Shown here: piece after piece, positions 30 through 64,000 of the stretch
Numbering within the stretch: position 1 is the stretch's first letter
How the letters are laid out: each line of letters starts with the position of its first letter
Virus record (IMG/VR): IMGVR_UViG_3300021520_000002
Coordinates: 221,573 to 285,572 of that record
Length of the DNA stretch: 64,000 nt
Strand: one strand, 5' to 3'
Position numbers and translations under genes: made by a program
The notes under the pieces: model-generated
Database searches by the model: none
Told to the model about the DNA's origin: nothing
The model's input: the letters and a program-made list of their open reading frames with translations, nothing else

Positions 30-236
30 TTACAGATGAACTGTATAAGTTTCCATTGGAAACTCAACTTCAACTAAATATTTGTGTTTTAAACAATATA
101 TTCTAGGTCTACCTCTTCCACTCCAATACATATATACTTTATGTATAGCTCCACATGTTGGACAAATACATTCAACCAAGGGTTCATGCACTTTACAATG
201 TTTTATTACTCTTGGTGGATTATTTAAATGGCGCAT
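30..236 (-). CDS. small Cys-rich hypothetical protein
   Basis: 68-aa ORF with CxCPxC and RPRIYC motifs, overlaps upstream gene. Confidence 0.6.
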   Translation of the reverse strand: MRHLNNPPRVIKHCKVHEPLVECICPTCGAIHKVYMYWSGRGRPRIYCLKHKYLVEVEFPMETYTVHL

Positions 237-7463: not shown

Positions 7464-8387
7464 TTATTTTTCCTTTTTAAAAGGTATTTTAGTAGATATA
7501 AATCCAGCTGCACCAGCGTGCCCACCACCACCATACTTCTTGGCTATTTCACTTACATCAACACCATTTTGACCTGAATATAAACTCACTGACCAGTTCT
7601 TGCCGTCATATATAAATGGTAATAATATATCATATTTATCTGTTCCACCAATTGATTTAAAATAATCTGAATTGCATTTTCCTAAGTTAACAGCAAAACA
7701 TTTATAACCTTCAAATTCAACTTCAAATCCATAAGATTTAAGAAAATCTTTAGACCAACCATCTCTATAAGCAATACAAATTTTTCCTTCAACAATAATT
7801 TTATTTATTGTTGATGCTTCATTATTTACTAAATCTATCCAAAAATTAGATTCAGGATTTGTATCATAAATTTCACAACCAATTACAAAAGGTTTAGTTT
7901 GTGGTAATTTTAAAGTCCATGTATCCCAATCACTAATTAATCTAGTAAATTTTGGAACTTGTTCATACATTTTAGTATTAAAAGATTTAACTTCACCTTT
8001 ACCTTGTTTAGTCATAATATTAAGATATATATAAGTTAAAGCACATCCAGCCATATTAATATAATTTGGATCTTTTTTAATTTCATCGGCACTTTTTGTT
8101 TCATATCTAATACCAGTAATTTCATTTCTAAAATTTTTATATTTATCAATAGAACTCTTATGATGATCTATCCAAACAACATTTGGAGTTATTTCAAGAA
8201 GATCTATCATTTCTTCTGGAGAAATTGAAAAATCGACGATATATACAGTTTCATTAGGTAAGATCTTGCCGATTGGAAATGGTTTATTATAATTAATTTC
8301 AAAAAACTCTTTTTTTAGTTCTGGTATAAATGTACACCAAAAAGCGGAACAACGTCCATCTAAATCATTATGATAAAATACTTTCAT
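7464..8387 (-). CDS. DHH/DHHA1 family phosphoesterase
   Basis: HNDLDG, VDFS, WIDHH, GGGGHAGAAG. Confidence 0.92.
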   Translation of the reverse strand: MKVFYHNDLDGRCSAFWCTFIPELKKEFFEINYNKPFPIGKILPNETVYIVDFSISPEEMIDLLEITPNVVWIDHHKSSIDKYKNFRNEITGIRYETKSADEIKKDPNYINMAGCALTYIYLNIMTKQGKGEVKSFNTKMYEQVPKFTRLISDWDTWTLKLPQTKPFVIGCEIYDTNPESNFWIDLVNNEASTINKIIVEGKICIAYRDGWSKDFLKSYGFEVEFEGYKCFAVNLGKCNSDYFKSIGGTDKYDILLPFIYDGKNWSVSLYSGQNGVDVSEIAKKYGGGGHAGAAGFISTKIPFKKEK

Positions 8388-10099: not shown

Positions 10100-10265
10100 T
10101 TTATTTCTCCATAAACTTTCTTAAATTCTTCAACCATTACTTCTTTATCTACTGGACATGTACAATTTGTAATATGTTCGGTATAAGCTATAAGATTAAT
10201 TATAGTATCATTATACATCCATTTTGTTCCATTAGCTTGTTGTATCATATGGAATAAGAACTCTT

Positions 10266-10460
10266 TCATTTTTCTCCTTTTTTACATTCATCACATCTTA
10301 ATACACCACCATCAGATTTATCAATTTTAAGTTTTTTATTAAAATAATAACAATTTCTATATTCATCATTATATCCCGAGCAACCACTTCCGAATCCTTC
10401 ATTACCACAATATTCATCATCAACAGTTATTTCAACTTCTATTAGCTTTTTAAGTTTCAT
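10266..10460 (-). CDS. hypothetical Cys-rich protein
   Basis: 64-aa ORF with SD, immediately downstream of the tRNA. Confidence 0.6.
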   Translation of the reverse strand: MKLKKLIEVEITVDDEYCGNEGFGSGCSGYNDEYRNCYYFNKKLKIDKSDGGVLRCDECKKGEK

Positions 10461-10481
10461 ACTTATACTCCTTTTTAAAAA

Positions 10482-10556
10482 TGGTGCCCAAGGTGAGAAT
10501 TGAACTCACGACCTAGTGTTTTAGAGGCACTCGCTCTACAACTGAGCTACTTAGGC
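10482..10556 (-). tRNA. tRNA with CUA anticodon (amber suppressor type)
   Basis: GCCTAAG TA GCTC AGTTGTA GAGC G AGTGC CT-CTA-AA ACACT AGGTC GTGAG TTCAATT CTCAC CTTGGGC A CCA; encoded CCA; C31-A39 mismatch and no D-loop GG. Confidence 0.88.
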
Positions 10557-10569
10557 ACCGATTTTATTT

Positions 10570-10863
10570 TTAAAGTAACCTTAATTTAGAAAATATTTTT
10601 TCATTATCAACAGTAGTTGCTAATGATGTGATTTGATTTCCTATATCAGGTTCTTTAAATATACTATATTCAATACTTTTCATATCCAGCTTAAATATCC
10701 ATTTTTCTAATTCTTCTTCATCATTAACACCAAGATAAACTAATGTACCATTATCCCAAGATGTTTTATTATGAAGAAGATATTCAGCAACAGCATGACC
10801 AGATTGAACAGCTTGTTGGGCTATCGATAAATCACGCCGCGTTAGCACATAAAGCTTCTTCAT
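10570..10863 (-). CDS. peptidyl-tRNA hydrolase 2 (Pth2)-like protein
   Basis: KLYVLTRRDL..AVQSGHA..LVYL..FKEPDIGNQITSLA; likely start MKKLYV overlapping upstream ORF. Confidence 0.8.
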   Translation of the reverse strand: MKKLYVLTRRDLSIAQQAVQSGHAVAEYLLHNKTSWDNGTLVYLGVNDEEELEKWIFKLDMKSIEYSIFKEPDIGNQITSLATTVDNEKIFSKLRLL

Positions 10864-11140
10864 ATCTTCTGGTCCATTCTTCTTTAATTTTTGTAATGTA
10901 TTTTTCATTAGCTGGATGATTTTCAGATGGTGTTTCAATCTGTTCTCTTGTTTTTCCTCTCAGTTCACATCTTGCAATGTGCCGATGACGAAATTCGTAT
11001 TGAAGATTATTAAGTTTATATTGTACTTCCCAACCTTTATTATTTGTTCTATAAGCTTCACTTCTTTCAATTTTTACATTATGAATATCTAAAGCTTTTT
11101 GTTTCATTTCTTCTTTAATTTCTTGATATACTAGATTCAT
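10832..11140 (-). CDS. phage hypothetical protein coupled to Pth2-like gene
   Basis: 102 aa, FRHRHIARCELRGKTREQIE motif, SD AAGGAG. Confidence 0.75.
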   Translation of the reverse strand: MNLVYQEIKEEMKQKALDIHNVKIERSEAYRTNNKGWEVQYKLNNLQYEFRHRHIARCELRGKTREQIETPSENHPANEKYITKIKEEWTRRYEEALCANAA

Positions 11141-11164
11141 GATTATTCTCCTTTTGATTTTTGA

Positions 11165-11230
11165 TTAAGAGTTCTACAATTTAATCTAAATCAAGGGAGG
11201 ACTTCTATTACTATTTTTAACCTAGGTCAT
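11165..11230 (-). promoter_or_regulatory. leader ORF M-T-amber-VKNSNRSPPLI-amber-IKL-amber-NS-ochre with anti-SD hairpin
   Basis: SD AGGAGGTG, ATG overlapping upstream TGA; CTCC in the Pro-Pro codons complementary to downstream GGAG. Confidence 0.6.
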
Positions 11231-11550
11231 AATCTATCACCTCCTTTTTGCTTACTAATTATTATCGGAATTTTATATTTCATAGCTATTTCTTTTAATT
11301 GTTTATATCGTTCATGAGCTTTTTCTAAATTTTCTTTAGTAGAACTTTCAATTACTAATAAAGAATCATAATCTAAAAATTTAATATTATTTTCTTTTAA
11401 ATACATTTCTACTATTTGATCTTCTGTTATAACTCCATAACTTATCATTAAATCAACATCACATTCTCCAATATTGCTAAACCAATCTTTTGCTTTTTTA
11501 ATAAGATCATTAATACTTTCTTGAAGATCTTTAAATGATATTTCTTTCAT
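11227..11550 (-). CDS. hypothetical protein
   Basis: ORF; C-terminal LKEIAMKYKIPIIISKQ resembles a DnaB-type helicase motif fragment. Confidence 0.6.
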   Translation of the reverse strand: MKEISFKDLQESINDLIKKAKDWFSNIGECDVDLMISYGVITEDQIVEMYLKENNIKFLDYDSLLVIESSTKENLEKAHERYKQLKEIAMKYKIPIIISKQKGGDRL

Positions 11551-11846
11551 TATTCTATCCATTCTCCAATTATATCTGCCGGTTGAAGACCATAATGTGG
11601 TGGAGCATTAATAGCAAAAGATGATAATGCTATTCCAAGAGGATTATGAACTATCGGCACAGATTCTATATTTTTTTCTCCAGGTCTATGTACAAAATAA
11701 ATTGAATCCTTAAAATCATCTTGACAAATCCAAACACAAATAACTTTCCATCCACCTCTAGTTCTATAATATTTACCTATTTCAAAATTATGTTGATTAT
11801 TGGTAATATTTATATTGTCTAAATCATATCCGTCATCTGTTTTCAT
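11550..11846 (-). CDS. hypothetical protein
   Basis: GKYYRTRGG and DIIGEW pattern. Confidence 0.65.
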   Translation of the reverse strand: MKTDDGYDLDNINITNNQHNFEIGKYYRTRGGWKVICVWICQDDFKDSIYFVHRPGEKNIESVPIVHNPLGIALSSFAINAPPHYGLQPADIIGEWIE

Positions 11847-11860
11847 TTATCCACTCCTCA

Positions 11861-12652
11861 TTAATAATTAGCTATTATAGCTTTTGCTGAATGTGCATGA
11901 ATAGATTCATCATTAACAACTTCAACTTTAAACTTTAAAATATCTTTAACTTGTGATAGTTTATTATAACATTCACGAGCTATATCTTCAACAAATTTAG
12001 AATTTTCATACATCTTTTCTGTAACTTCTTTTTCATCAGGACGTTTTAATACTGAATAAATTTCACAAGATGATGATTCTTCGGCAATTTTAACTAAATC
12101 TTCAATCCAAATAAATGCATCTTCTTTAGCTTCACAAATAATTTTTATTCTACTTTTTTGATTATGTGCTGATATCTTACTAATTTCTTTACTACATGGA
12201 CAACTTGAAGTAGCAATAGTTTCAACACTTAATCTGAACATATGACCTTTTGCTGTTTTAATTATATTAAACCAAATTTCATATGGTAATATTCCAGGTT
12301 CAAAACTTATTGGTGCGTGCTTAGTTAGAAAATAAGGAAAATAATAACCAAGATCACACAAATCTGCTTCTGTGGATCTTCTTATATTTTCTGCAATTTT
12401 AATCATTAATTTACTACTTAATTGTTCTTTTGCAAATTTCATTAAACCAATAGGTATTCTACTCATAGATATACCTTTAATATCTGGTGCAAGATCAACA
12501 AAACAACTAATATTAGCTACACTATGTTGAACTCCCCCATCTTTTTGTGATATGAATATCGGCAATTTAAAATCAGTTATACCCACTCTATTAATTGAAA
12601 TTTTATGAATAGGTTCTTGTTCATTCTGAATATCTGGTAATTTTTTGTTCAC
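11861..12652 (-). CDS. folE2: GTP cyclohydrolase IB
   Basis: LPDIQ, KGISMSR, SCPCSKEIS, AHNQKS, FVEDIAR, ESIHAHSA. Confidence 0.93.
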   Translation of the reverse strand: MNKKLPDIQNEQEPIHKISINRVGITDFKLPIFISQKDGGVQHSVANISCFVDLAPDIKGISMSRIPIGLMKFAKEQLSSKLMIKIAENIRRSTEADLCDLGYYFPYFLTKHAPISFEPGILPYEIWFNIIKTAKGHMFRLSVETIATSSCPCSKEISKISAHNQKSRIKIICEAKEDAFIWIEDLVKIAEESSSCEIYSVLKRPDEKEVTEKMYENSKFVEDIARECYNKLSQVKDILKFKVEVVNDESIHAHSAKAIIANY

Positions 12653-12653
12653 T

Positions 12654-13028
12654 CTATTTCTCCTTAATATTTATATTTAAGCCAGAACTTATTAAATGAA
12701 AATTTTGAATAACATTATTTTTATCAACTCTTCCTATGCCTTTTAATGAAAGTGAAAATATATTTTCTTTAAACCCATTTTCTAATAAAGCAAAAATAGT
12801 GTTATTTATAGATTCATTAATAATTTCAACTTCTGCTGTTTCTTTATCTTGATTAATTTTTGCAATTCCAATCATATTTTTAAATTTTACTGCAAAAGGG
12901 TTTTCTTCAAAATTATTACTACTCTCTTGAGTTATAAATATTTCTTTTCCAATATATTCTTCTAAAATATCTTCTTGATATTTTCTTCCATTTGAATTAA
13001 GATTATCAAAACTAAGTTTTAATTTCAC
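12654..13028 (-). CDS. degenerate prohead-protease-like protein
   Basis: NSNGRKY and SLKGIG resemble T4 gp21-type NxNxRxY and SSRGxG, catalytic residues not evident. Confidence 0.4.
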   Translation of the reverse strand: MKLKLSFDNLNSNGRKYQEDILEEYIGKEIFITQESSNNFEENPFAVKFKNMIGIAKINQDKETAEVEIINESINNTIFALLENGFKENIFSLSLKGIGRVDKNNVIQNFHLISSGLNINIKEK

Positions 13029-13029
13029 T

Positions 13030-13542
13030 TTATTTCTCCTCTTTTAATCTAATATGTTCATCCATAATTTTTTCAGAATAAATTCTTCCATTATAACTTG
13101 TTTTCTCTCCTAAAGCTTTAACTAAAAAATCTTCTACATATTTTTGAATACCTGGTTTGCTACTTTCTCTGTTACCGGCAACATTTAACACTTCAATTTT
13201 GTTCCATTCAATCCATCTTTTAAAAGCTTCTTCTATTGGATTGATTATATATGGTTTTCCTAATTTCTTACATGTTCCTAAAGTTAATTTAGCTCCAGGA
13301 CTATTTACATCTCCAAACCAAAGAGTACCTTGAGAATTTTTTACATTTTCAATAGTTCTTGGTTTATACTGCCAATCAGAATGTTCTACTAATCCAAAAT
13401 CTTTAAGTGTTTGATTAGGTCCTATATCTGTTCTATATCCTTTTGGTGCGGTTCCCCCAGTTTCAATTCCCAGTTTTTTACCAGCAAGAAGACCTCCAAA
13501 ATCACCACCAGTTTGACCACCTGAGATTATTTTTCTAATCAT
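13030..13542 (-). CDS. SLOG-superfamily putative molybdenum carrier protein
   Basis: KIISGGQTG, RTIENVKNSQGTL, LNVAGNRES. Confidence 0.88.
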   Translation of the reverse strand: MIRKIISGGQTGGDFGGLLAGKKLGIETGGTAPKGYRTDIGPNQTLKDFGLVEHSDWQYKPRTIENVKNSQGTLWFGDVNSPGAKLTLGTCKKLGKPYIINPIEEAFKRWIEWNKIEVLNVAGNRESSKPGIQKYVEDFLVKALGEKTSYNGRIYSEKIMDEHIRLKEEK

Positions 13543-13846
13543 TTTTTCTCCATTCAAATTGTAAAATTGTTAAATGTAATAAAGTTTCTAGTTTTAATTC
13601 AGTTTTAGTATTAAATTCTTTACTCTCTTTAATTTTTCTTACTAGAGCATTATGAGCATTAATATATTCTTCAATTGGTCCAAAATTTGTAATAAAATTT
13701 AAAGTTAAAATATCATCATTTTTAAGATGTGCATCTTTATAATTTGAATTGCTTATATTTTTCATTATTAATATTTTATTTTCTTCTATTTCAATATAAT
13801 CTTCTTTTATAATTTCTTTTAAAGAATTTAACGTTTGTACTTTCAC
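13535..13846 (-). CDS. hypothetical protein
   Basis: 103-aa ORF, GTG start after AGGAG. Confidence 0.55.
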   Translation of the reverse strand: MKVQTLNSLKEIIKEDYIEIEENKILIMKNISNSNYKDAHLKNDDILTLNFITNFGPIEEYINAHNALVRKIKESKEFNTKTELKLETLLHLTILQFEWRKND

Positions 13847-17499: not shown

Positions 17500-18631
17500 C
17501 TAAAATTCAATTGTGACTTTGATGTTTTTTGGAAATGGTTTTGGAAGTTTATCTTTTAATAAATAAACTGTTCCTATCCAAGGTCTTTCTCCATCATCCT
17601 CTTCCTTATATCTGACTGTACCTTTTGTTTCTTTTTCTATTTCAAAATCTAACTCTATTTTTTTATCATCAAAAGATTTACTCATTTTCCTTTTTCTCCT
17701 TCTTTGTTATTTTCCTAAGAATTTTTACAACTTCATCAATTATCTTACTCCATATTATTTGTATTAAAAGAAATAAGAGTAGAGCTTGTAAAAATCCCCC
17801 ATACCATATAATACTAAAATTTGATGGAAAATATAATTCACAAAAGATTCTCATAATTGATAATAATGATATTGATATTAAAAATATTAGTATATATCTC
17901 ATCTTTATCCCTTCTTTGTTAAAGTTATTTCAACATTACAACTATATTCCATATCATAATCATCAAAATTAATATTTAATGTTTCTGCTAATTTTTTACC
18001 TTTTTCAAGAATTGCTTCTTCTAAAGGTTCAACATCAAAAAATTCAACATCTACAACATCTTCAATAGCATAAGTTTCAATTATTATTTTATCCATTTCT
18101 TATTTCAGCTATCATTTCATTAAATTTAATTCTTGCCGATTTATATTCATTTACAATTTCATCATAATTTATATCATCAAAATTTCCGAAAGTTCTGTTT
18201 AATATACTTCTATATTCATTAATTACATTTGACATTTTATCAATATCATAATTAAGAGGAATTTCTTTTTCTACTTCTTCCATTCTTTTTTCAAATTCTT
18301 CATGTGATTTCATTTCTTACTCCTTAACAACTAACTCTATAATTGTGATTTCTACTTCATAATCTTTTCCATCAATATATGTTAAATCGTGATCATCTTT
18401 TGGAGTTGTACATATTTTTAGAAACTCTTCCATATATTCTTTAGCTTTATCTTCAGATGTGAATATGAATTTACTTTTAATAACTGTCTTCTGTTCAAAA
18501 CAAGCTAATTGTCCACGAATACTGAGTTGATATAATTTAAGATCTTTAATATTATAAGTTGTTGTTTCAGAATATTTAAATAAACTATCAGGTTTTATAT
18601 TTGTTTTCTTCTTACTCATCTTCTTCCTCAA
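17500..18631 (-). CDS. five small hypothetical ORFs (17500-17685, 17678-17902, 17905-18096, 18089-18313, 18317-18631) between the beta-prime halves
   Basis: tightly packed, overlapping, co-oriented ORFs. Confidence 0.6.
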
Positions 18632-19802
18632 TATTAATTTTTTTCATTCTAACTATTGTTGTTGCTAACAATTTTTCTTGTGGAACATCTTCAGCTGTGA
18701 AGTATTCAACAAATTCATCAAATAATTGTTTATTATCTTTATATTCTTGAGTAACAACAGTATGATATATTTGAAGATAAGTATATTCTGGATGTTTTTC
18801 TTGAATATAATTAGCAAAATAAGGTAACCACAATTTATATAAAATTTCTTTACTTACTTTAATTTTATATGGTGGTAAGCTTGGATTGATTGTAATTACA
18901 GATCTTGCCGAAAACTCAATAGTTTTACCAAGAACAGATGATCTTATAAGACCCCATTTTCCAGATATATTTTCAAATACTTTTTCATATACCTTATCAA
19001 CATAATATTGATATTTAGCGGTCATTCTATCATATTCCTGAATCATTTGTTCTACAATTTCATCATCTAATTGTTCTTTCATACTTTTGTTAATTCTTAA
19101 TAACCAATCTTCTTCTTTATCATCTTTAACACTTCTTGTTGAAGCATTAGATTTATTTAATTGAACTAAACTAATATAAGGTTTATTCACTTCTGTATAT
19201 CTAAAACTTTCAGGTTTATTTGGATCTCTTATTACCGGCCGAACTTCAGGAGGTAATACTTTTATTGTATCCATTATATAACCTTTATCAAATAATTCTT
19301 GAGCTACAGCAATATGCATATAGTCCGCTAAATATTTTAAACAAAGAATAAAACTATATATTCCTGTTATTCTTAATGGTATAATATACCATCCATTTAT
19401 TTTATTAATTGAATCAACAATTTTTAATTTAGTTGTGTCACCAGATAATGCAAGAAATCTTGATGTTGCAGCTGTTGCATCTGCTCTTCTTGGATTTAAT
19501 AAATGTTTATGTGTTCCAACTATTTTCTTAAAATACTTTGTTCTTTTTGTTGGTTTAATAACCGGAAAAATTAAATTTATTTTACCGAAAGTTGATAATC
19601 TTGATTCATTACTAATACACATTACTCCACATTTATCACAAATATTTCCTTGATCAAGAACTTTTACTGATAATTTACCACATTTACATGTAAAATCTTT
19701 TATTGGTCCAAATATACTTTCACTAAAAAGTCCATCTTCATCAAACTTATTCTGTTTGTTAAAGATCTTGGGACTTGTTACTTCGCCTCGGTACTGTCCC
19801 AA
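18612..19802 (-). CDS. phage RNA polymerase beta-prime-like subunit, N-terminal part
   Basis: DGLFSESIFGP, Zn-finger CKCG..CDKCGV, VLPPEVRP, GKWGLIRSSVLGKTIEFSARSVI. Confidence 0.92.
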   Translation of the reverse strand: MGQYRGEVTSPKIFNKQNKFDEDGLFSESIFGPIKDFTCKCGKLSVKVLDQGNICDKCGVMCISNESRLSTFGKINLIFPVIKPTKRTKYFKKIVGTHKHLLNPRRADATAATSRFLALSGDTTKLKIVDSINKINGWYIIPLRITGIYSFILCLKYLADYMHIAVAQELFDKGYIMDTIKVLPPEVRPVIRDPNKPESFRYTEVNKPYISLVQLNKSNASTRSVKDDKEEDWLLRINKSMKEQLDDEIVEQMIQEYDRMTAKYQYYVDKVYEKVFENISGKWGLIRSSVLGKTIEFSARSVITINPSLPPYKIKVSKEILYKLWLPYFANYIQEKHPEYTYLQIYHTVVTQEYKDNKQLFDEFVEYFTAEDVPQEKLLATTIVRMKKINIEEEDE

Positions 19803-20691: not shown

Positions 20692-21078
20692 TTATATTTT
20701 AATTTTCAAACATGCCCTAGCTAGAGCTATAATATGTTTACAACCTGATGGTATATTAAATTCGTTTTTTTCTTTTGGTCTCTTGATAATTGATCTTAAG
20801 AAAGCTATAGCATTTATTAAACTACCAGCTTTAAATACAGCATTAGCAAATTCAAATTTAAAGCTTTCACAATTACATGTAACTTTTACAGAAGATTTAA
20901 GATTTATTTTATTATCATAAATTTCTATAATTTGTTCATATTTATCAGTTCTACTTTTTACTTCAATACCATATTCTGTTTTCTTCGGAATAATAGATAA
21001 TAATCTTATTTTATCAACAAGTTTTTCTCTATCTTTAAAGGCTGTTGGAAATCTAATAAAATCATTAAGTGTAAGCAA
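20692..21078 (-). CDS. SWIM Zn-finger protein
   Basis: CNCESF...CKHIIA. Confidence 0.75.
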   Translation of the reverse strand: MLTLNDFIRFPTAFKDREKLVDKIRLLSIIPKKTEYGIEVKSRTDKYEQIIEIYDNKINLKSSVKVTCNCESFKFEFANAVFKAGSLINAIAFLRSIIKRPKEKNEFNIPSGCKHIIALARACLKIKI

Positions 21079-21087
21079 TATAACCTC

Positions 21088-21393
21088 CTATCCATTCGAC
21101 ATTACTGATCCTGCTGCTGTTATAATACTACCATTTATACATCCAGCAACAGTATCACCAAGTCGAGCTACACCAAGATTATTTGCCATTACAGTTGGAC
21201 TTGCAGATACTATAGTAGTAGAATGTCCACAGAAACCTATACCAATATCACCCATTCTAGCTTGTCCCATATTTTCAGTCATTACATTTGGACTTGCTGT
21301 AATTATTATTCCAGATGAACTTATACATGGTGGTTTAGCATGACAACAACAAACACCTATAAACATATCATTCATTCTTGCATTTCCTGGCAT
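21088..21393 (-). CDS. PAAR-like baseplate spike tip protein
   Basis: three ARxxD repeats (NARMND, QARMGD, VARLGD), I(I/V)xASPxV, Cys/His ligands. Confidence 0.88.
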   Translation of the reverse strand: MPGNARMNDMFIGVCCCHAKPPCISSSGIIITASPNVMTENMGQARMGDIGIGFCGHSTTIVSASPTVMANNLGVARLGDTVAGCINGSIITAAGSVMSNG

Positions 21394-21402
21394 AATTTCC
21401 TC

Positions 21403-22548
21403 CTAACCAATTAAGTACCAATATATTTTCCAACCATTTTCAACGAAAATCCAATCATAGGTCCATTTATCTCCAGTTTGTGTCCAATATCTTGTCCAAT
21501 CGGCACCAACTCCTGGCTCTGTTGCTGATGAAGATCTATGTTTAAGAATACAAGTATAAATATGATCACCATTGTAAAGAACTCTATCAATTTTATAAGA
21601 TTTATTAGTAATCCAATTATCATATAAAGTTACACCTGGTTCTGTTTGAGATGATGCTGTATGATTTCTTAAACATCTATAAACTAAATTATTACTTGCA
21701 TAAATTATATTATCAGTAATGTAAGCTGTTCCAGAAGTCCAATTACCATATAAATCAACACCTGGTTCATTTCTATTTGATGATGTATGATCTAATAAAC
21801 ACCCATAAACATGAGTAGACAAATATAATGCTTGTCCTTGACCATAAGCTGTAGCTAATATCCAATCACCATCATATAAACCAACATAAGTCCAACCAAA
21901 TTCTCTTAATATTTCTAATAAATACATAACAAATAATTGTTGATTTCTAGCATCAAATCCTGGAACTGGAGTTACTCTTGGGTGTGCGTTTGTCATATAA
22001 ATTGATCTAAGACCAAGACCAGAACCAAGACTATATCTAAATTCTTCCAAATTTGCCGTATCAGATGCATCTCCACCATCTATAAGAGCTTTTAAATCTA
22101 TATATCCATCTGCTATTTCTATTTCACCAGTTGTTGGATCTGGTGGAGGATCTGGATCTGGTGGTATTGTAGGTTCTGGTGGTGGAGTTGCCGATAAATC
22201 AAATAAAGATTCATAAAATGGAACACCAACAGTTAATATATCAGACCAATTTTCATATAAGCTTCTTATATCTTCACCAGCAATAAGTTCTGGAATTGGT
22301 GGAGCTTGAACTGGTAAATTCATACTGAATTTAATAGCTATATACCCATATAAAGGTAATAGAAAATCAGTCATTGAAGCTTTAACAGCACCAATCTTAT
22401 AACTATCATAAGAAGTTTGTAAATCTGTTAAAAATCCATTCATAATAGATAATAATTCTGGTTTATTTGTATAACTAGTTTCATTTATTCTTGTTGTCCA
22501 ATGACTTTGAGCTAAAGGTATCCATGTTGCGATCTGACGTAATAACAT
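21403..22548 (-). CDS. virion protein with C-terminal CBM5/12-like repeats
   Basis: three YxCxxxHxS...EPGV...W modules; Pro-rich linker. Confidence 0.7.
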   Translation of the reverse strand: MLLRQIATWIPLAQSHWTTRINETSYTNKPELLSIMNGFLTDLQTSYDSYKIGAVKASMTDFLLPLYGYIAIKFSMNLPVQAPPIPELIAGEDIRSLYENWSDILTVGVPFYESLFDLSATPPPEPTIPPDPDPPPDPTTGEIEIADGYIDLKALIDGGDASDTANLEEFRYSLGSGLGLRSIYMTNAHPRVTPVPGFDARNQQLFVMYLLEILREFGWTYVGLYDGDWILATAYGQGQALYLSTHVYGCLLDHTSSNRNEPGVDLYGNWTSGTAYITDNIIYASNNLVYRCLRNHTASSQTEPGVTLYDNWITNKSYKIDRVLYNGDHIYTCILKHRSSSATEPGVGADWTRYWTQTGDKWTYDWIFVENGWKIYWYLIG

Positions 22549-22636
22549 TTTTCCTCCGAAAAATATTTGATATTAAATTTATTATTTCTATAAATAAATA
22601 GAAATTTTATTTTAAAAAGAAAAGATCAAGAAAAGT

Positions 22637-58986: not shown

Positions 58987-61900
58987 ATGAATGTGCCACC
59001 TTATGGTGATGATAATAGACGAAAAAATAGCCATTTTAGTACCCTTAAAGTGTCGGCACAACAACAGCCAAACTTATCAGTAAGGGTTTCCCCAGGTGGA
59101 TTTTGGCACAATAGTGAATATGGCTTCACTTATTATGATTTTATTGGTGGTAGTACACCTGGTATTACACCACCAATTTCAGATGCTTATTGGGTAATTG
59201 TAGCTCTTAATGTTGTTAATGATCTCGTTGAAATTGAAACTATATATGGTCCAATTGCCCACCATTCACCACCTTTACCTCAAATTCCGATTGGAAGAAT
59301 ATCTCTTGCCGCTATCTATTTAGAGAGTACAGATCTCAAAATAACTGATGAAATGATTTATGATGTAAGAGCACTTTATCATACATTAGATGAATTAAAT
59401 GGTGAGGATGGAACATCGGGGAGTTCAGGTAGTAGTGGAAGATCAGGAACAAGTGGTTCTTCAGGTACAAGTGGAAGACAAGGTACTTCTGGTACTTCAT
59501 CAACATCTGTAACTTCGGGAACATCAGGAATAGGAACCTCTGGTACTTCTGGATCATCAGGAATTTCTGGAACATCAGGTCGTTCTGGTACTAGTGGAAC
59601 CTCGGCAACATCAGTAACTTCTGGAACATCAGGTAGAACAGGTTCTTCAGGTACATCCGGTTCTTCTGGTCGTTCTGGTACTTCAGGTCGTTCTGGAACA
59701 AGTGGAACATCTGGAAGTAGTGGTTCATCTGGAACTTCAGGAAAAAAAGGTGATGTAGGAACTTCTGGAACAGGTGGAACTTCAGGATCATCAGGTAGTT
59801 CAGGTAGTAGCGGTTCAAGTGGTAGTAGTGGTACTTCTGCAACATCAGTAACATCTGGAACTTCAGGTTCTAATGGTACTTCAGGGTCTTCTGGAACAAG
59901 TGGAAGCTCTGGAACAAGTGGTTCATCTGGTACAAGTGGAACTTCAGGTACATCTGGTTCTGATGGTTCTTCTGGTACATCTGGTAGTAGTGGAACAAGT
60001 GGAAGCTCTGGAACATCAGGAAGTTCAGGTACAAGTGGTTCTGATGGAACGTCTGGAACTTCAGGTTCTGATGGCACATCAGGTAGTTCTGGTACAAGCG
60101 GTATAGATGGATCATCTGGAACAAGTGGTATAGATGGCACATCAGGTACGTCAGGTTCTGATGGAACTTCAGGTAGCTCTGGATTATCAGGAAGTTCTGG
60201 TACATCTGGTTCTGATGGAACTTCTGGAAGTTCAGGTTCATCGGGTTCTGATGGTACATCTGGATCTTCAGGTAGTAGTGGAACTAGTGGAATAGATGGA
60301 ACATCTGGAACATCGGGTTCTGATGGAACTAGTGGTTCTTCAGGCACATCAGGATTTGGAACTTCAGGTAGTTCTGGAACAAGTGGTTCTGGAACATCAG
60401 GAAGTTCAGGCACAAGTGGTATAGATGGAACGTCTGGAACTTCAGGTTCTGATGGAACTTCAGGTAGCTCTGGATTATCAGGAAGTTCTGGAACATCAGG
60501 AAGTTCAGGTACAAGTGGAACTTCAGGTTCTGATGGTACTTCTGGGTCTTCTGGAACAAGTGGAAACTCTGGAACCTCAGGAAGTTCTGGTACAAGTGGT
60601 ATAGATGGAACGTCTGGAACTTCAGGTTCTGATGGTACTTCTGGGTCTTCTGGAACAAGTGGAAGCTCTGGAACTTCAGGTTCTGATGGTACTTCCGGGT
60701 CTTCTGGAACAAGTGGAAGTTCTGGTACATCAGGTAGTTCTGGTACAAGTGGTATAGATGGAACGTCTGGAACTTCAGGGTTTTCTGGAACAAGTGGAAG
60801 CTCTGGAACTAGTGGAATAGATGGTACATCAGGTTCATCTGGGACAAGCGGTTCAAGTGGAACATCAGGTAGTTCTGGAACAAGTGGAACTTCAGGTTCT
60901 GATGGTACTTCTGGATCTTCAGGAACTTCAGGTTCTGATGGTACAAGTGGAAGTTCTGGCACATCAGGTAGTTCAGGTACAAGTGGTACTTCTGGAACAT
61001 CTGGAAGTTCTGGTACAAGTGGTATAGATGGAACGTCTGGAACTTCAGGTTCTGATGGAACTTCTGGGTCTTCTGGAACAAGTGGGTCGAGTGGAACATC
61101 TGGTAGTTCTGGTTCATCTGGAAGTTCTGGTACAAGTGGTATAGATGGTACGTCTGGAACTTCAGGTTCTAATGGTACTTCAGGGTCTTCTGGAACAAGT
61201 GGAAGTTCTGGCACCAGTGGTACATCTGGATCTGATGGTACATCTGGATCTTCAGGTAGTTCTGGAACAAGTGGTAGTAGTGGAACGTCTGGAAGTTCTG
61301 GTACAAGTGGAACTTCAGGTTCTGATGGTACTTCCGGGTCTTCTGGAACGTCTGGAAGTTCTGGTACAAGTGGAACTTCAGGTTCTGATGGTATATCAGG
61401 GTCTTCTGGCACAAGTGGAAGTTCTGGAACATCAGGTAGTTCAGGTACAAGTGGTAGTAGTGGATCATCTGGTTCTGACGGTACAAGTGGGTCAAGTGGC
61501 ACATCAGGAAGTTCAGGTACGAGTGGACATAGTGGAACATCAGGATCTTCTGGAACAAGTGGAGAAGGTTTTGAATGGGTTGGAGCTTGGACACTTTCTG
61601 ATTCTTATGATTTAAATCAAATAGTTGAAGATGGTGGTAATTCATACATCTGTAAATTAGCAAATATAGCAACAGCAAATACTGAACCTGGTATTGGTGA
61701 TGATTGGGAAACATATTGGGATTTATTTGCTCATGGTGGTACAGGAACATCTGGTACATCAGGAAGTTCAGGTTCTGATGGAACTTCTGGGTCGAGTGGA
61801 ACATCTGGAAGTTCAGGTACTAGTGGTATAGATGGAACATCAGGTTCTAGTGGAACATCTGGTAGTTCAGGTACAAGTGGAAGTAGTGGAACATCTGGAA

Positions 61901-64000
61901 CATCAGGTTCTGATGGAACATCTGGTAGTTCTGGAACTTCAGGTTCTGATGGTACTTCAGGTTCTAGCGGTAGTAGTGGAACAAGTGGTAGTAGTGGAAC
62001 AAGTGGTAGTAGTGGAACAAGTGGTATAGATGGAACATCAGGGTCTAGTGGAACTTCAGGAAGTTCTGGAACTAGTGGAACTTCAGGTTCTGATGGAACA
62101 AGTGGCACGTCTGGTACAAGTGGTATAGATGGTACGTCTGGAACTTCAGGTTCTAATGGTACTTCAGGGTCTTCTGGAACAAGTGGAAGTTCTGGAACAA
62201 GTGGTTCATCTGGTACAAGTGGTTCATCTGGTACAAGTGGAACTTCAGGTACATCTGGTTCTGATGGTTCTTCTGGTACATCTGGTACATCTGGTAGTAG
62301 TGGAACAAGTGGGTCGAGTGGAACATCAGGAAGTTCAGGTACAAGTGGTTCTGATGGAACGTCTGGAACTTCAGGTTCTGATGGCACATCAGGTAGTTCT
62401 GGTACAAGCGGTATAGATGGATCATCTGGAACTTCAGGTTCTGATGGAACTTCTGGGTCTTCTGGAACAAGTGGGTCGAGTGGAACATCTGGTAGTTCTG
62501 GTACATCTGGAAGTTCTGGTACAAGTGGTATAGATGGAACGTCTGGTACTTCAGGGTCTTCTGGAACAAGTGGAAGCTCTGGAACATCTGGAAGTTCTGG
62601 TACAAGTGGTATAGATGGAACGTCTGGAACTTCAGGTTCTAATGGTACTTCAGGGTCTTCTGGAACAAGTGGAAGCTCTGGAACATCTGGAAGTTCTGGT
62701 ACAAGTGGTATAGATGGAACGTCTGGAACTTCAGGTTCTGATGGAACTTCTGGGTCTTCTGGAACAAGTGGGTCGAGTGGAACATCTGGTAGTTCTGGTT
62801 CATCTGGAAGTTCTGGTACAAGTGGTATAGATGGTACGTCTGGAACTTCAGGTTCTAATGGTACTTCAGGGTCTTCTGGAACAAGTGGAAGCTCTGGAAC
62901 ATCTGGAAGTTCTGGTACATCTGGAACTTCAGGTTCTGATGGAACCTCTGGGTCTTCTGGAACAAGTGGTGAAGGGACAGCTGGAACCTCTGGAAGTTCT
63001 GGAACATCTGGAGTAAGTGGAAGTTCTGGAAGTGATTATTTTTATCAATCTGGTAATGGTGATGATGGATATAGATATTCAAATAGTTTTGATAATACAT
63101 CATTATATGTTCAATTAGGAAAAGGCACTTCTAATGGTACCAGTGCATTTTTTAGATTTGTAAATGTGACAATTCCAAAAGGAGCAATAATATTATCTGC
63201 AATTTTAACTCTCACATCAACAACTGATGATTCATCTGACTTTATGCATTTAGATTATTTTTTTAATGATGCTGATGATGCAATTGCTCCTACGAATATT
63301 ACAGAACTTGATAATTTAGCTAAAACAACGAATATTCGTCAATGGGATTTTGATCATTTTGTAACAGATCAATCTTATGATTCTCCAGAACTTAAGACTA
63401 TTCTTCAAACAGTTATTAATAGAAATGGTTGGGAATCTGGTAATGCAGTAATAATAATGATGAATGATATTTCAAGTTCAGCAAATGCTGGAAGAAAAGT
63501 TTATTCGATTAGAGATGAAGAAGGTTATCAACCTGAATTATATGTATATTGGTATATGCCTTCTACAAGTGGAACCTCTGGAAGTTCAGGTACAAGTGGT
63601 ATTGGAACATCAGGTTCTGATGGAACCTCTGGAAGTTCTGGAACAAGTGGTAGTAGTGGAACGTCAGGAGCAGCTGGAGCGCCAGGTACATCTGGAACTT
63701 CAGGTTCTGATGGAACCTCTGGAAGTTCTGGAACAAGTGGTAGTAGTGGAACGTCAGGAGCAGCTGGAGCGCCAGGTACATCTGGAACTTCAGGTTCTGA
63801 TGGAACAAGTGGAACTTCAGGATCTGATGGAACTTCAGGATCTTCAGGAACATCTGGAGGGACTGGAACATCAGGAAGTTCTGGAACAAGTGGTAGTAGT
63901 GGAACGTCAGGAGCAGCTGGAGCGCCAGGTACATCTGGAACTTCAGGTTCTGATGGAACCTCTGGAAGTTCTGGAACAAGTGGTAGTAGTGGAACGTCAG
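58987..64000 (+). CDS. giant Gly-Ser/Thr triplet fibre protein, 3-prime truncated by window (at least 1671 codons; absent from ORF track)
   Basis: SD GGGAGG then [30 protein letters not shown], paralogous to 55603; CBM5/12-like module near 61564-61735; DNRLRE/CBM96-like domain near 63035-63560. Confidence 0.85.
59401..64000 (+). repeat. 9-bp-periodic low-complexity repeat encoding [12 protein letters not shown] triplets, with near-exact 90-bp duplications after 63619
   Basis: directly visible. Confidence 0.9.

Follow-up and report, generated by a model that had tools for sequence, protein, structure and literature searches.

Does a short open reading frame (ORF) interrupted by in-frame amber codons, located just upstream of an operon that includes an amber-suppressor tRNA, function as a sensor of stop-codon readthrough, or is it a chance product of the sequence? 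The locus lies on the minus strand of a 64,000-nucleotide stretch of a 285-kb jumbo phage (IMG/VR record IMGVR_UViG_3300021520_000002, positions 221,573 to 285,572; hereafter, the window). A preliminary description proposed that only ribosomes reading through the amber codon reach an Arg-Ser-Pro-Pro motif, stall, and free the Shine-Dalgarno sequence (SD) of the next gene, so that the module would sense amber readthrough and switch on peptidyl-tRNA recycling. All the sequence elements of this description lie at the stated positions (Table 1), and comparison with relatives indicates that the arrangement is not due to chance. The reading that best accounts for the data, held with reasonable confidence but supported by comparative sequence evidence only, is a readthrough-dependent arrest attenuator, of which no description was found in the literature.

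Table 1. Elements of the leader region and of the downstream operon; all are on the minus strand, and positions refer to the window.
Position	Element	Details
11238-11245	SD of the leader ORF	AGGAGGTG; inside the last codons of the upstream ORF
11165-11230	Leader ORF	M-T-amber-VKNSNRSPPLI-amber-IKL-amber-NS-ochre; ATG 11230-11228, TAGs 11224-11222, 11188-11186 and 11176-11174, TAA 11167-11165; three in-frame TAGs in 21 sense positions
11195-11206	Arg-Ser-Pro-Pro codons	AGA AGT CCT CCC; presumed ribosome-arrest site; CUCC (11199-11196) of the Pro codons is also the anti-SD
11148-11199	Imperfect hairpin	5' arm 11199-11181, 3' arm 11168-11148; CUCC pairs with GGAG (11151-11148) of the gene 1 SD
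11147-11153	SD of gene 1	AAGGAGA; sequestered in the hairpin
10832-11140	Gene 1	102 aa; predicted all-helical protein of unknown function; motif E-F-R-H-x-H-I-A-x-C-x-L-R-G (here, RHxHIA)
10570-10863	Gene 2	97 aa; predicted Pth2 fold, putative peptidyl-tRNA hydrolase 2-like; start overlaps the end of gene 1 by 32 nt
10482-10556	tRNA(CUA)	amber suppressor; CCA encoded; 13 nt after the gene 2 stop
11227-11562	Upstream ORF	111 aa; unknown function; TGA stop overlaps the leader ATG as ATGA

The window sequence taken alone does not prove the model. The hairpin is the centroid structure of the region, but it is modest (-12 kcal/mol), and the 121-nt stretch that contains it does not fold better than shuffled sequences (z = -0.34). 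The leader is the only SD and ATG-NNN-TAG-purine start in the window that makes sense as a gated ORF, whereas other SD and ATG-NNN-TAG sites look like chance. The upstream ORF, from which the leader may also be entered by coupled ribosomes, is not conserved upstream of the leader in other loci. A blastn search of the 2.9-kb region against GenBank phages returned only one irrelevant 69-nt hit, and thus there are no cultured relatives; a search of Rfam matched only the tRNA; and a promoter and terminator scan of positions 10200-12800 gave nothing above shuffles and no terminator, so that the transcription unit could not be delimited.

The proof that the pattern is more than chance is comparative. 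Among 91 distinct loci, with gene 1 proteins 27-64% identical, 74 carry a strict core composed of TAG, up to 12 codons, Pro-Pro, and a stop within 2 codons, against 0.64 +/- 0.83 (maximum 4) in 200 dinucleotide shuffles and 2 of 348 upstream regions of other genes in the same loci; variants recognized by eye bring the count to about 87. The leader is present in 58 of 73 clusters at 70% protein identity and in 13 of 14 at 50%, although the loci are not phylogenetically independent. It is also present in all 3 MAG contigs found in a separate scan, which are probably mis-binned phage DNA, so that no host was inferred. In the reverse direction, a DNA pattern of the leader alone found 32 IMG/VR sites, at least 17 of which are followed by gene 1 or Pth2-like relatives, while most of the rest lie beside a tRNA(CUA).

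The features conserved within the leader point to selection as a translated ORF. An SD-like motif precedes the start in at least 74 of the 91 loci, and the frame is kept. In-frame TAGs are the most conserved feature: all 73 parsed leaders carry 1-2 of them before the last Pro-Pro, TAG is codon 3 in 45, and the following base is a purine in 115 of 116 cases, mostly in ATT, GTT, ATA, or GTA. Moreover, the last UAG is 3 or more codons before Pro-Pro in 72 of 73 leaders, and none of the 82 gene 1 ORFs is interrupted. Pro-Pro is conserved at the amino-acid level, with 12 different codon pairs, including in loci where the anti-SD lies elsewhere. The preceding residues give RGPP (23), RSPP (8), RAPP (2), and RDPP (1), which belong to the RAPP-like arrest motifs that resist EF-P, lie near the C-terminus of small uORFs, and work with short N-terminal context (PMC12992588). 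However, the Arg is not universal, as a second class, [Y/F/L]-K-P-P, makes up 27 of 73 leaders; RSPP, the motif of the window, is reported only as a partially permissive variant, and arrest on peptides of 7-15 residues, or on xKPP at all, is conjectural. A stop directly after Pro-Pro is the rule (51/73), and both poly-Pro C-termini and the base after UAG modulate termination (PMC6412442). In this respect the window is atypical, since its leader continues past Pro-Pro through two more UAGs.

The masking of the gene 1 SD is likewise supported across the family. The minimum-free-energy partner of the SD lies 0 to +25 nt from the first Pro nucleotide in 66 of 66 loci, in the Pro codons in 28 and just after them in 38, a placement within the reach of a ribosome sitting on Pro-Pro if this extends about 11-15 nt 3' of the P site. 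The duplex energy is -11.5 kcal/mol against -3.9 kcal/mol for random windows of the same locus. The anti-SD also co-varies with the SD flank: the native anti-SD:SD duplex is -13.5 kcal/mol against -8.2 kcal/mol for cross-locus pairs, with 0 of 2000 permutations reaching the native mean. These per-locus folding and cross-locus duplex tests were preferred because RNAalifold on a MAFFT alignment of 50 leader-to-start segments returned no consensus structure, as loop lengths and anti-SD positions differ. The SD pairing probability is only moderately above shuffles that keep composition (0.90 vs 0.71), a weak control because such shuffles keep pyrimidine-rich words.

The operon content agrees with the preliminary description, which listed a hypothetical gene, a Pth2-like hydrolase, and a tRNA with a CUA anticodon: a Pth2-like gene is next after gene 1 in 70 of 81 loci, and a tRNA(CUA) lies within 1.5 kb downstream in 51 of 70. 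The primary regulated gene is nevertheless gene 1, and as the Pth2-like gene is not always present, the switching on of peptidyl-tRNA recycling remains a guess. No relative of gene 1 was recognized in Pfam, in PHROGs, in the PDB by sequence, or in the PDB and BFVD by fold; its AlphaFold model (pLDDT 94.5) shows three long helices, with weak, non-significant look-alikes of the seryl-tRNA synthetase coiled-coil arm, and a profile search found 794 homologues, all unnamed. The gene 2 product scores below the Pfam cut-off for PTH2 (PF01981; E 1.6e-3, 19.1 bits against 23), although 23 of 39 relatives match at E<0.01 (best 1.8e-7), and the family profile matches the PDB Pth2 entry 2zv3 at E 2.3e-4 over the N-terminal 70 residues only. 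The predicted structure (pLDDT 96.6) has the Pth2 alpha/beta fold, and the top 14 Foldseek hits are all Pth2 (2zv3, 3erj, 1q7s, 1wn2, 1xty), with E down to 2e-6 and TM 0.72-0.81. The tRNA is a canonical cloverleaf according to ARAGORN and Rfam (RF00005, 66.3 bits), while the 71 distinct tRNAs of the family are too diverse for a simple call of the amino acid carried. Interestingly, decoding of UAG in these phages receives indirect support from 16 related Pth2-like genes that carry exactly one in-frame TAG, 13 of them at the same aligned site, and from loci without gene 1, in which the Pth2-like ORF itself starts ATG-X-TAG. No such gene is found in the window, where UAG behaves as an ordinary stop: it ends 8 of 82 ORFs, and the three same-frame ORFs separated by TAG belong to different PHROG families, so that general TAG recoding of this phage is not supported within the 64 kb analysed.

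Taken together, these data suggest a translational attenuator whose input is amber-codon readthrough. A ribosome would start at the leader and meet UAG at codon 3; if RF1 wins, it leaves after two codons, more than 20 nt upstream of the anti-SD, and the hairpin stays closed with the SD of gene 1 hidden. If the phage tRNA(CUA) decodes the UAG, the ribosome would run on to Arg-Ser-Pro-Pro, in most relatives after reading a second UAG, which would sharpen the response. There, it would be held by a RAPP-like block of peptide-bond formation and, in most relatives, by slow termination at the stop directly after Pro-Pro. The held ribosome would sit on the anti-SD, which in relatives lies either in the Pro codons themselves or 10-18 nt further on, and would therefore free the SD for a second ribosome to translate gene 1, with the overlapping Pth2-like gene translated by coupling. 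Stalling and its activating effect are inferred. The logic can only be guessed: the phage may make the two proteins only once amber suppression is actually working, either to deal with its consequences (peptidyl-tRNA from drop-off or non-stop ribosomes) or to reinforce or tune suppression.

Among the alternatives, the one that survives best, although unlikely, is readthrough-dependent coupling without arrest, in which any ribosome that translates through or terminates near the 5' arm briefly melts the hairpin, and Pro-Pro is incidental or serves another purpose. In agreement with this, the window ORF continues through the hairpin to a TAA inside its 3' arm, and some relatives have long tails after Pro-Pro that run to within 13-28 nt of the gene start. 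However, the retention of Pro-Pro in about 87 of 91 leaders with synonymous codon changes, usually with a basic residue before it and a stop directly after, is hard to explain without a pause, and RGPP, the strongest known arrest motif (PMC12992588), is the commonest form. Somewhat less likely still, the leader may act mainly on transcription or RNA stability, with translation beyond the UAG preventing Rho loading or nuclease attack and thus controlling the whole transcript, including the co-transcribed tRNA(CUA), in a positive feedback loop. The tRNA indeed lies on the same strand 13 nt after gene 2, with no terminator-like site between, and synthetic switches with UAG in the tna leader work in this way (PMC6412442). 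Yet the co-varying anti-SD:SD pairing points to control of initiation, no rut-like or terminator feature was identified, and in several loci the tRNA lies upstream of the leader.

Two further readings are remote. In an RNA-only operator, the hairpin would be a binding site, for example for the gene 1 protein in autoregulation, or a simple SD mask, and the small ORF a by-product of AT-rich sequence; CCUCC is needed for anti-SD pairing in class-1 loci such as the window, and gene 1 codes for a basic helical protein that could bind RNA. Against this, in 38 of 66 loci the anti-SD is separate from the Pro-Pro codons, yet Pro-Pro, the frame, the start, the SD, and the UAG context are all kept, and the core pattern is about 100-fold enriched over shuffles. 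In the inverse logic, the held ribosome would repress the operon, a homeostat for suppression strength that would be useful to a phage still using UAG as a stop; however, this ribosome is 42-77 nt from the gene start, too far to occlude it, while it covers the anti-SD, which predicts activation, and the direct in-ORF UAG gating of Pth2-like genes has the same positive sign. Lastly, the reading of TGA as sense (code 4 or 25), which would extend the upstream ORF across the spacer to TAA 11145-11143 in a frame open from 11607 to 11143 with TGAs at 11229 and 11193, is contradicted by TGA ending 26 of 82 confident ORFs in the window and by the lack of conservation of that ORF and frame in relatives, in contrast to the amber leader.

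A more speculative and doubtful possibility is that the module is a checkpoint for the state of the genetic code, in which the leader measures the ratio of suppressor-tRNA decoding to RF1 termination and, only above a threshold, releases the RHxHIA proteins together with the Pth2-fold enzyme. These could then act on UAG decoding itself by antagonising RF1, assisting or deacylating the suppressor tRNA, or clearing peptidyl-tRNA(CUA) and non-stop ribosomes, thereby locking in, or setting the level of, stop-codon reassignment during infection. [quoted passage not shown] On the main reading, the leader would be a natural cis-acting device reading out suppression efficiency, built from parts of understood biochemistry, and a compact, evolved biosensor for genetic-code-expansion work. 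Moreover, it singles out two protein families, tied to suppression by leader gating, an internal UAG, and UAG at codon 3, as candidates for new factors acting on UAG decoding.

The closest known systems are the RAPP-like arrest peptides (ApdA, ApdP, ApcA, and the RAPP/RGPP uORFs of Streptomyces), which share the R-[A/G/S/D]-P-P motif close to the C-terminus of a small upstream ORF and, as inferred for the phage leaders, EF-P-resistant arrest and control of the downstream gene by unmasking its ribosome-binding site (PMC12992588, PMC10951233, PMC7897499). Those peptides are mostly secreted or membrane monitoring substrates of tens to hundreds of residues, released by a pulling force and encoded by bacteria upstream of Sec/YidC or other genes, whereas the phage leaders described here are in most loci 7-25 residues long, shorter than the exit tunnel, with no hydrophobic segment or targeting signal; access to their motif appears to be gated by one to three in-frame UAGs, and nearly 40% use xKPP instead of RxPP. 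If confirmed, the leader would extend RAPP-type arrest to phages, to very short peptides, and to a new kind of input. The ermC, ermB, and cat-type attenuators also combine a short leader ORF that has its own SD with a hairpin that sequesters the SD of the resistance gene and is opened by a stalled ribosome, but there the stall is induced by an antibiotic bound in the exit tunnel, while here it is presumed to be intrinsic and the variable input is passage beyond UAG. In PepNL of E. coli, competition between a release factor and a tRNA at a stop codon decides the outcome (PMC11890864), as is inferred here; however, the arrest is at the UGA codon and readthrough by Trp-tRNA abolishes it, whereas here readthrough would be the precondition for reaching the presumed arrest site and the tRNA is a dedicated phage suppressor encoded in the same operon. 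Synthetic switches with UAG in the tna or trp leader make downstream expression depend on a suppressor tRNA, as proposed here, and several UAGs in series raise their ON/OFF ratio, although they are engineered, act through Rho-dependent termination, and respond to an unnatural amino acid (PMC6412442). The code-change modules of stop-codon-recoded phages cluster suppressor tRNAs with translation-related genes and use in-frame stops to time expression (Borges et al. preprint), but no Pth2-like gene, gene 1 family, or gated leader is described in that work. Lastly, the analogy with the lambda bar minigenes, drawn in the preliminary description, is only formal: both are two-codon ORFs (ATG-NNN-stop) behind a strong SD and linked in some way to peptidyl-tRNA hydrolase, but bar toxicity arises from peptidyl-tRNA drop-off in Pth-deficient hosts, while the conserved continuation to Pro-Pro-stop indicates that the leader ORF is meant to be read through.

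The window is part of the IMG/VR contig IMGVR_UViG_3300021520_000002 (285,572 bp, 30.5% G+C), and each element of the preliminary description, namely a leader ORF interrupted by amber codons, a hairpin that pairs with the SD of the next gene, and an operon of a hypothetical gene, a Pth2-like gene and a tRNA with anticodon CUA, is found on the minus strand where it had been placed. The leader frame opens with ATG ACC TAG, continues with GTT AAA AAT AGT AAT up to AGA AGT CCT CCC, and then runs through TTG ATT TAG and ATT AAA TTG TAG to AAC TCT TAA, while its ATG overlaps the TGA stop of an upstream 111-aa ORF (ATGA). In the centroid fold (-12 kcal/mol), the CUCC of the Pro codons, followed by UUGAUUU and GAUUAA, pairs with UUAAUC, AAAUCAA, and the GGAG of the SD of the next gene. 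By itself, this arrangement could be due to chance in AT-rich DNA, because the 121-nt stretch folds no better than shuffles.

Features of the window and of related loci for which positions were assigned (L numbers denote individual loci recovered in the scans for relatives)
Source	Coordinates	Strand	Feature	Remarks
Window	11245-11238	-	SD of the leader ORF, AGGAGGTG	precedes the leader ATG
Window	11230	-	ATG of the leader ORF
Window	11140-10832	-	102-aa ORF (gene 1)
Window	10863-10570	-	97-aa ORF (gene 2, Pth2-like)	overlaps gene 1
Window	10556-10482	-	tRNA with anticodon CUA
Window	11143-11607	-	frame that would stay open if TGA were read as sense	ends at a TAA 3 nt before the gene-1 ATG
Window	11861-12652, 13030-13557, 12654-13028	-	FolE2-type GTP cyclohydrolase I (E 5e-73), circularly permuted YpsA/SLOG protein (E 3.5e-28), DUF7320-like protein	just upstream of the module; may be a nucleotide or 7-deazaguanine-type modification cluster
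Window	20692-22572	-	three ORFs in one frame (381 aa, a 101-aa PAAR-like protein, 128 aa)	separated only by TAG plus 9 nt; amber suppression would fuse them
Window	18612-19802 and other ORFs	- (18612-19802)	fragments of a multisubunit RNA polymerase (Rpb2 domain 6; Rpb1 domains 1, 2, 5)	as in phiKZ-like jumbo phages
Window	7464-8387		DHH phosphoesterase
Window	~59300-63150	both	highly repetitive region with long open frames on several frames and strands	one scanned ORF matches collagen triple-helix repeats (E 6e-34), probably a collagen-like fibre protein
L012	~2983		Pth2-like ORF starting ATG-X-TAG	gene 1 absent; tRNA(CUA) immediately upstream
L014	~2974		Pth2-like ORF starting ATG-X-TAG	gene 1 absent
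L016	~2986		Pth2-like ORF starting ATG-X-TAG	gene 1 absent
L018	~2980		Pth2-like ORF starting ATG-X-TAG	gene 1 absent; tRNA(CUA) immediately upstream
L019	~2953		Pth2-like ORF starting M-G-F-T-TAG	gene 1 absent
L066	~55-85		leader M-R-TAA-IYKPP-TAG	TAA instead of TAG at codon 3; contig too short to see its tRNA
L123	~1880		leader M-TAG-VFKPP-TAA	ATG directly followed by TAG
L096	330-402		tRNA with anticodon UCA (opal suppressor type)	about 250 nt upstream of an amber-gated leader

Protein-guided scans of IMG/VR and JGI metagenomes, performed with the product of gene 1 (motif E-F-R-H-x-H-I-A-x-C-x-L-R-G) and with that of gene 2, gave about 140 loci, and after the removal of duplicates 91 distinct upstream regions remained, with gene-1 proteins 27-64% identical to that of the window. 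The first seven regions examined already showed the same design, consisting of an SD, ATG-X-TAG, a few codons, Pro-Pro and a stop, with an anti-SD either in the Pro codons or just after the stop. The strict core of this pattern (TAG, at most 12 codons, CCN CCN, at most 2 codons and a stop, with no TAA or TGA between) occurs in 74/91 regions, against 0.64 +/- 0.83 (maximum 4) in 200 dinucleotide shuffles, 2/348 upstream regions of other ORFs in the same loci, and 2/91 reverse complements. Most of the other 17 regions are variants with a longer tail after Pro-Pro, while loci missed by a parser that requires an SD, because of a weak SD or a later first TAG, do carry the strict core. Real exceptions are L039 (His-Pro-Thr), L126 (Arg-Ser-Pro), L066, and L102 (inverted gene order, no leader). 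The core is present in 58 of 73 clusters at 70% protein identity and in 13 of 14 at 50%, and the three MAG contigs found in the genome collection also carry leader variants.

Among 73 distinct parsed leaders, the first TAG is codon 3 in 45, and one TAG precedes the last Pro-Pro in 30 leaders and two in 43. Some leaders are tandem modules such as TAG-IKIPP-TAG-VRGPP-TAG (more generally, TAG-IK(I/V)PP-TAG-VRGPP-TAG), sometimes behind a 12-35-residue Gly/Arg/Trp-rich N-terminal part, in which the frame runs after the last TAG into the anti-SD (ILL-stop). The base after TAG is a purine in 115/116 cases, the next codon is ATT, GTT, ATA or GTA in 87, and the preceding codon is often the Thr codon ACR; together with a recurrent 5' context before the second TAG, (G)-F-T-TAG-(I/V), this preference may tune termination against suppression. 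Pro-Pro is written with 12 different codon pairs, and the two residues that precede it give RGPP in 23 leaders, RSPP in 8, RAPP in 2 and RDPP in 1 (34 in all), in addition to xKPP in 27, RPPP in 3 and a few others. A stop follows Pro-Pro directly in 51 leaders (all 73 leaders by next stop: TAA 45, TAG 14, TGA 11; 3 tails reach no stop before the gene start); the tail of the leader in the window is unusual, and 72 of 73 leaders have at least three codons between the last TAG and Pro-Pro. The synonymous variation, the kept frame, and the loci in which the anti-SD is separate from the Pro codons show selection on a translated peptide, not only on an RNA word.

In all 66 loci with enough spacer, the MFE partner of the SD core lies 0 to +25 nt from the first Pro nucleotide, in the Pro codons in 28 loci and after them in 38. 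Specifically, the 25-nt window starting at Pro-Pro pairs with the SD region at -11.5 kcal/mol, against -3.9 for random windows of the same locus, and is in the best 5% in 86% of loci. Notably, the pairing co-varies: the anti-SD of each locus binds its own SD flank at -13.5 kcal/mol, against -8.2 for the SD flanks of other loci, 0 of 2000 permutations reach the native mean, and the own SD is the best of 66 partners in 20 loci and in the top three in 37. A global RNAalifold consensus, in contrast, failed because lengths differ. If a ribosome unwinds about 11 nt and protects about 15 nt on the 3' side of its P-site codon, a ribosome on Pro-Pro would cover the anti-SD, while a ribosome waiting at the last TAG would not.

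Indirect support for the decoding of UAG in these phages comes from sixteen related Pth2-like genes that contain exactly one in-frame stop, always TAG, followed by a purine in every gene whose +4 base was read. In thirteen of them the TAG sits at the same aligned site, just after the first helix (..AEWLLxHx-TAG-Gxx(E)W.N..). Interestingly, in the five loci lacking gene 1 that are listed in the table, the Pth2-like ORF itself is interrupted by an early TAG, which would be a direct amber gating in place of a leader, whereas none of the 82 gene-1 ORFs is interrupted. Synthesis of the Pth2-like protein would therefore be tied to amber suppression in three ways, which argues that gating is the selected property. 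The window itself shows no TAG-recoded genes: TAG ends 8/82 ORFs and the same-frame neighbours are distinct families; the three ORFs separated only by TAG belong to different PHROG families and are separate genes. TylF-type and other methyltransferases and CYTH and HD domains are present in the window, while no release factor or aminoacyl-tRNA synthetase was found in it.

Conversely, IMG/VR was scanned with a DNA pattern for one leader subtype only (GGAG, 5-9 nt, ATG NNN TAG RT, 7 nt, CCN CCN TRR), which found 32 sites. Seventeen of these are followed by gene-1 and/or Pth2-like relatives, and most of the others lie next to a tRNA(CUA) and precede other small, unannotated helical proteins, including a family starting MSIELKIK.. 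and a family with ..LNLYHELRGS.YRH. Some of these proteins look like distant relatives of gene 1 (hhalign probability 82%, E 1e-5, and 40%, E 2.9e-4), two loci carry two adjacent tRNA(CUA) genes, and only two sites look random.

The predicted structure of the gene 2 product (pLDDT 96.6) has the Pth2 fold, and its 14 best PDB matches are all Pth2, with E down to 2e-6 and TM 0.72-0.81. At the sequence level it is a distant member, with 19.1 bits against the Pfam cut-off of 23 and a profile match to 2zv3 at E 2.3e-4. Pth2 in jumbo phages has been noted before as a possible ribosome-rescue factor, without any link to suppressor tRNAs (PMC7824862). The gene 1 product is confidently modelled (pLDDT 94.5) as three long helices, with no significant match in PDB or BFVD and no Pfam, PHROG-function or PDB sequence relative, although a profile search found 794 unnamed homologues. 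Pth2-like is the next gene in 70/81 loci, and tRNA(CUA) lies within 1.5 kb downstream in 51/70.

The best-supported model, which rests on sequence comparison without experimental evidence, is a translational attenuator whose input is amber readthrough. If RF1 terminates at the early UAG, the hairpin stays closed, while if tRNA(CUA) decodes the UAG or UAGs, the ribosome reaches R[G/S/A/D]PP or xKPP, usually followed by a stop, where it is held on the anti-SD, and the freed SD lets gene 1 be translated; the overlapping gene 2 would follow by coupling. Stalling, the sign of regulation, and coupling are inferences; the parts of the model are supported by the literature. RAPP, RGPP, RSPP and RDPP are arrest motifs that resist EF-P, tolerate short N-terminal context, and sit near the C-terminus of regulatory uORFs (PMC12992588), although RSPP is only a partially permissive variant, and arrest by peptides this short and by xKPP is unproven. 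Poly-Pro C-termini slow termination, the base after UAG affects RF1, and several UAGs in series raise the ON/OFF ratio of synthetic switches (PMC6412442). Alternatively, readthrough may act by coupling without arrest, which appears unlikely, or, with still less support, the leader may control transcription or RNA stability; an RNA-only operator and an inverse logic are more doubtful still. A recoding of TGA, under which the upstream 111-aa ORF would extend almost to gene 1, is rejected, and the open frame is judged a coincidence.

Full-text searches found no natural amber-gated leader and no link between Pth2 and suppressor tRNAs in phages, and the main survey of recoded phages mentions neither. 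The nearest known systems are RAPP-type arrest peptides, erm-type attenuators, PepNL, in which readthrough cancels the arrest, prfB autoregulation, and synthetic amber-in-leader switches. The module is therefore regarded as a form of leader-peptide arrest attenuation that differs from those already known in its input.
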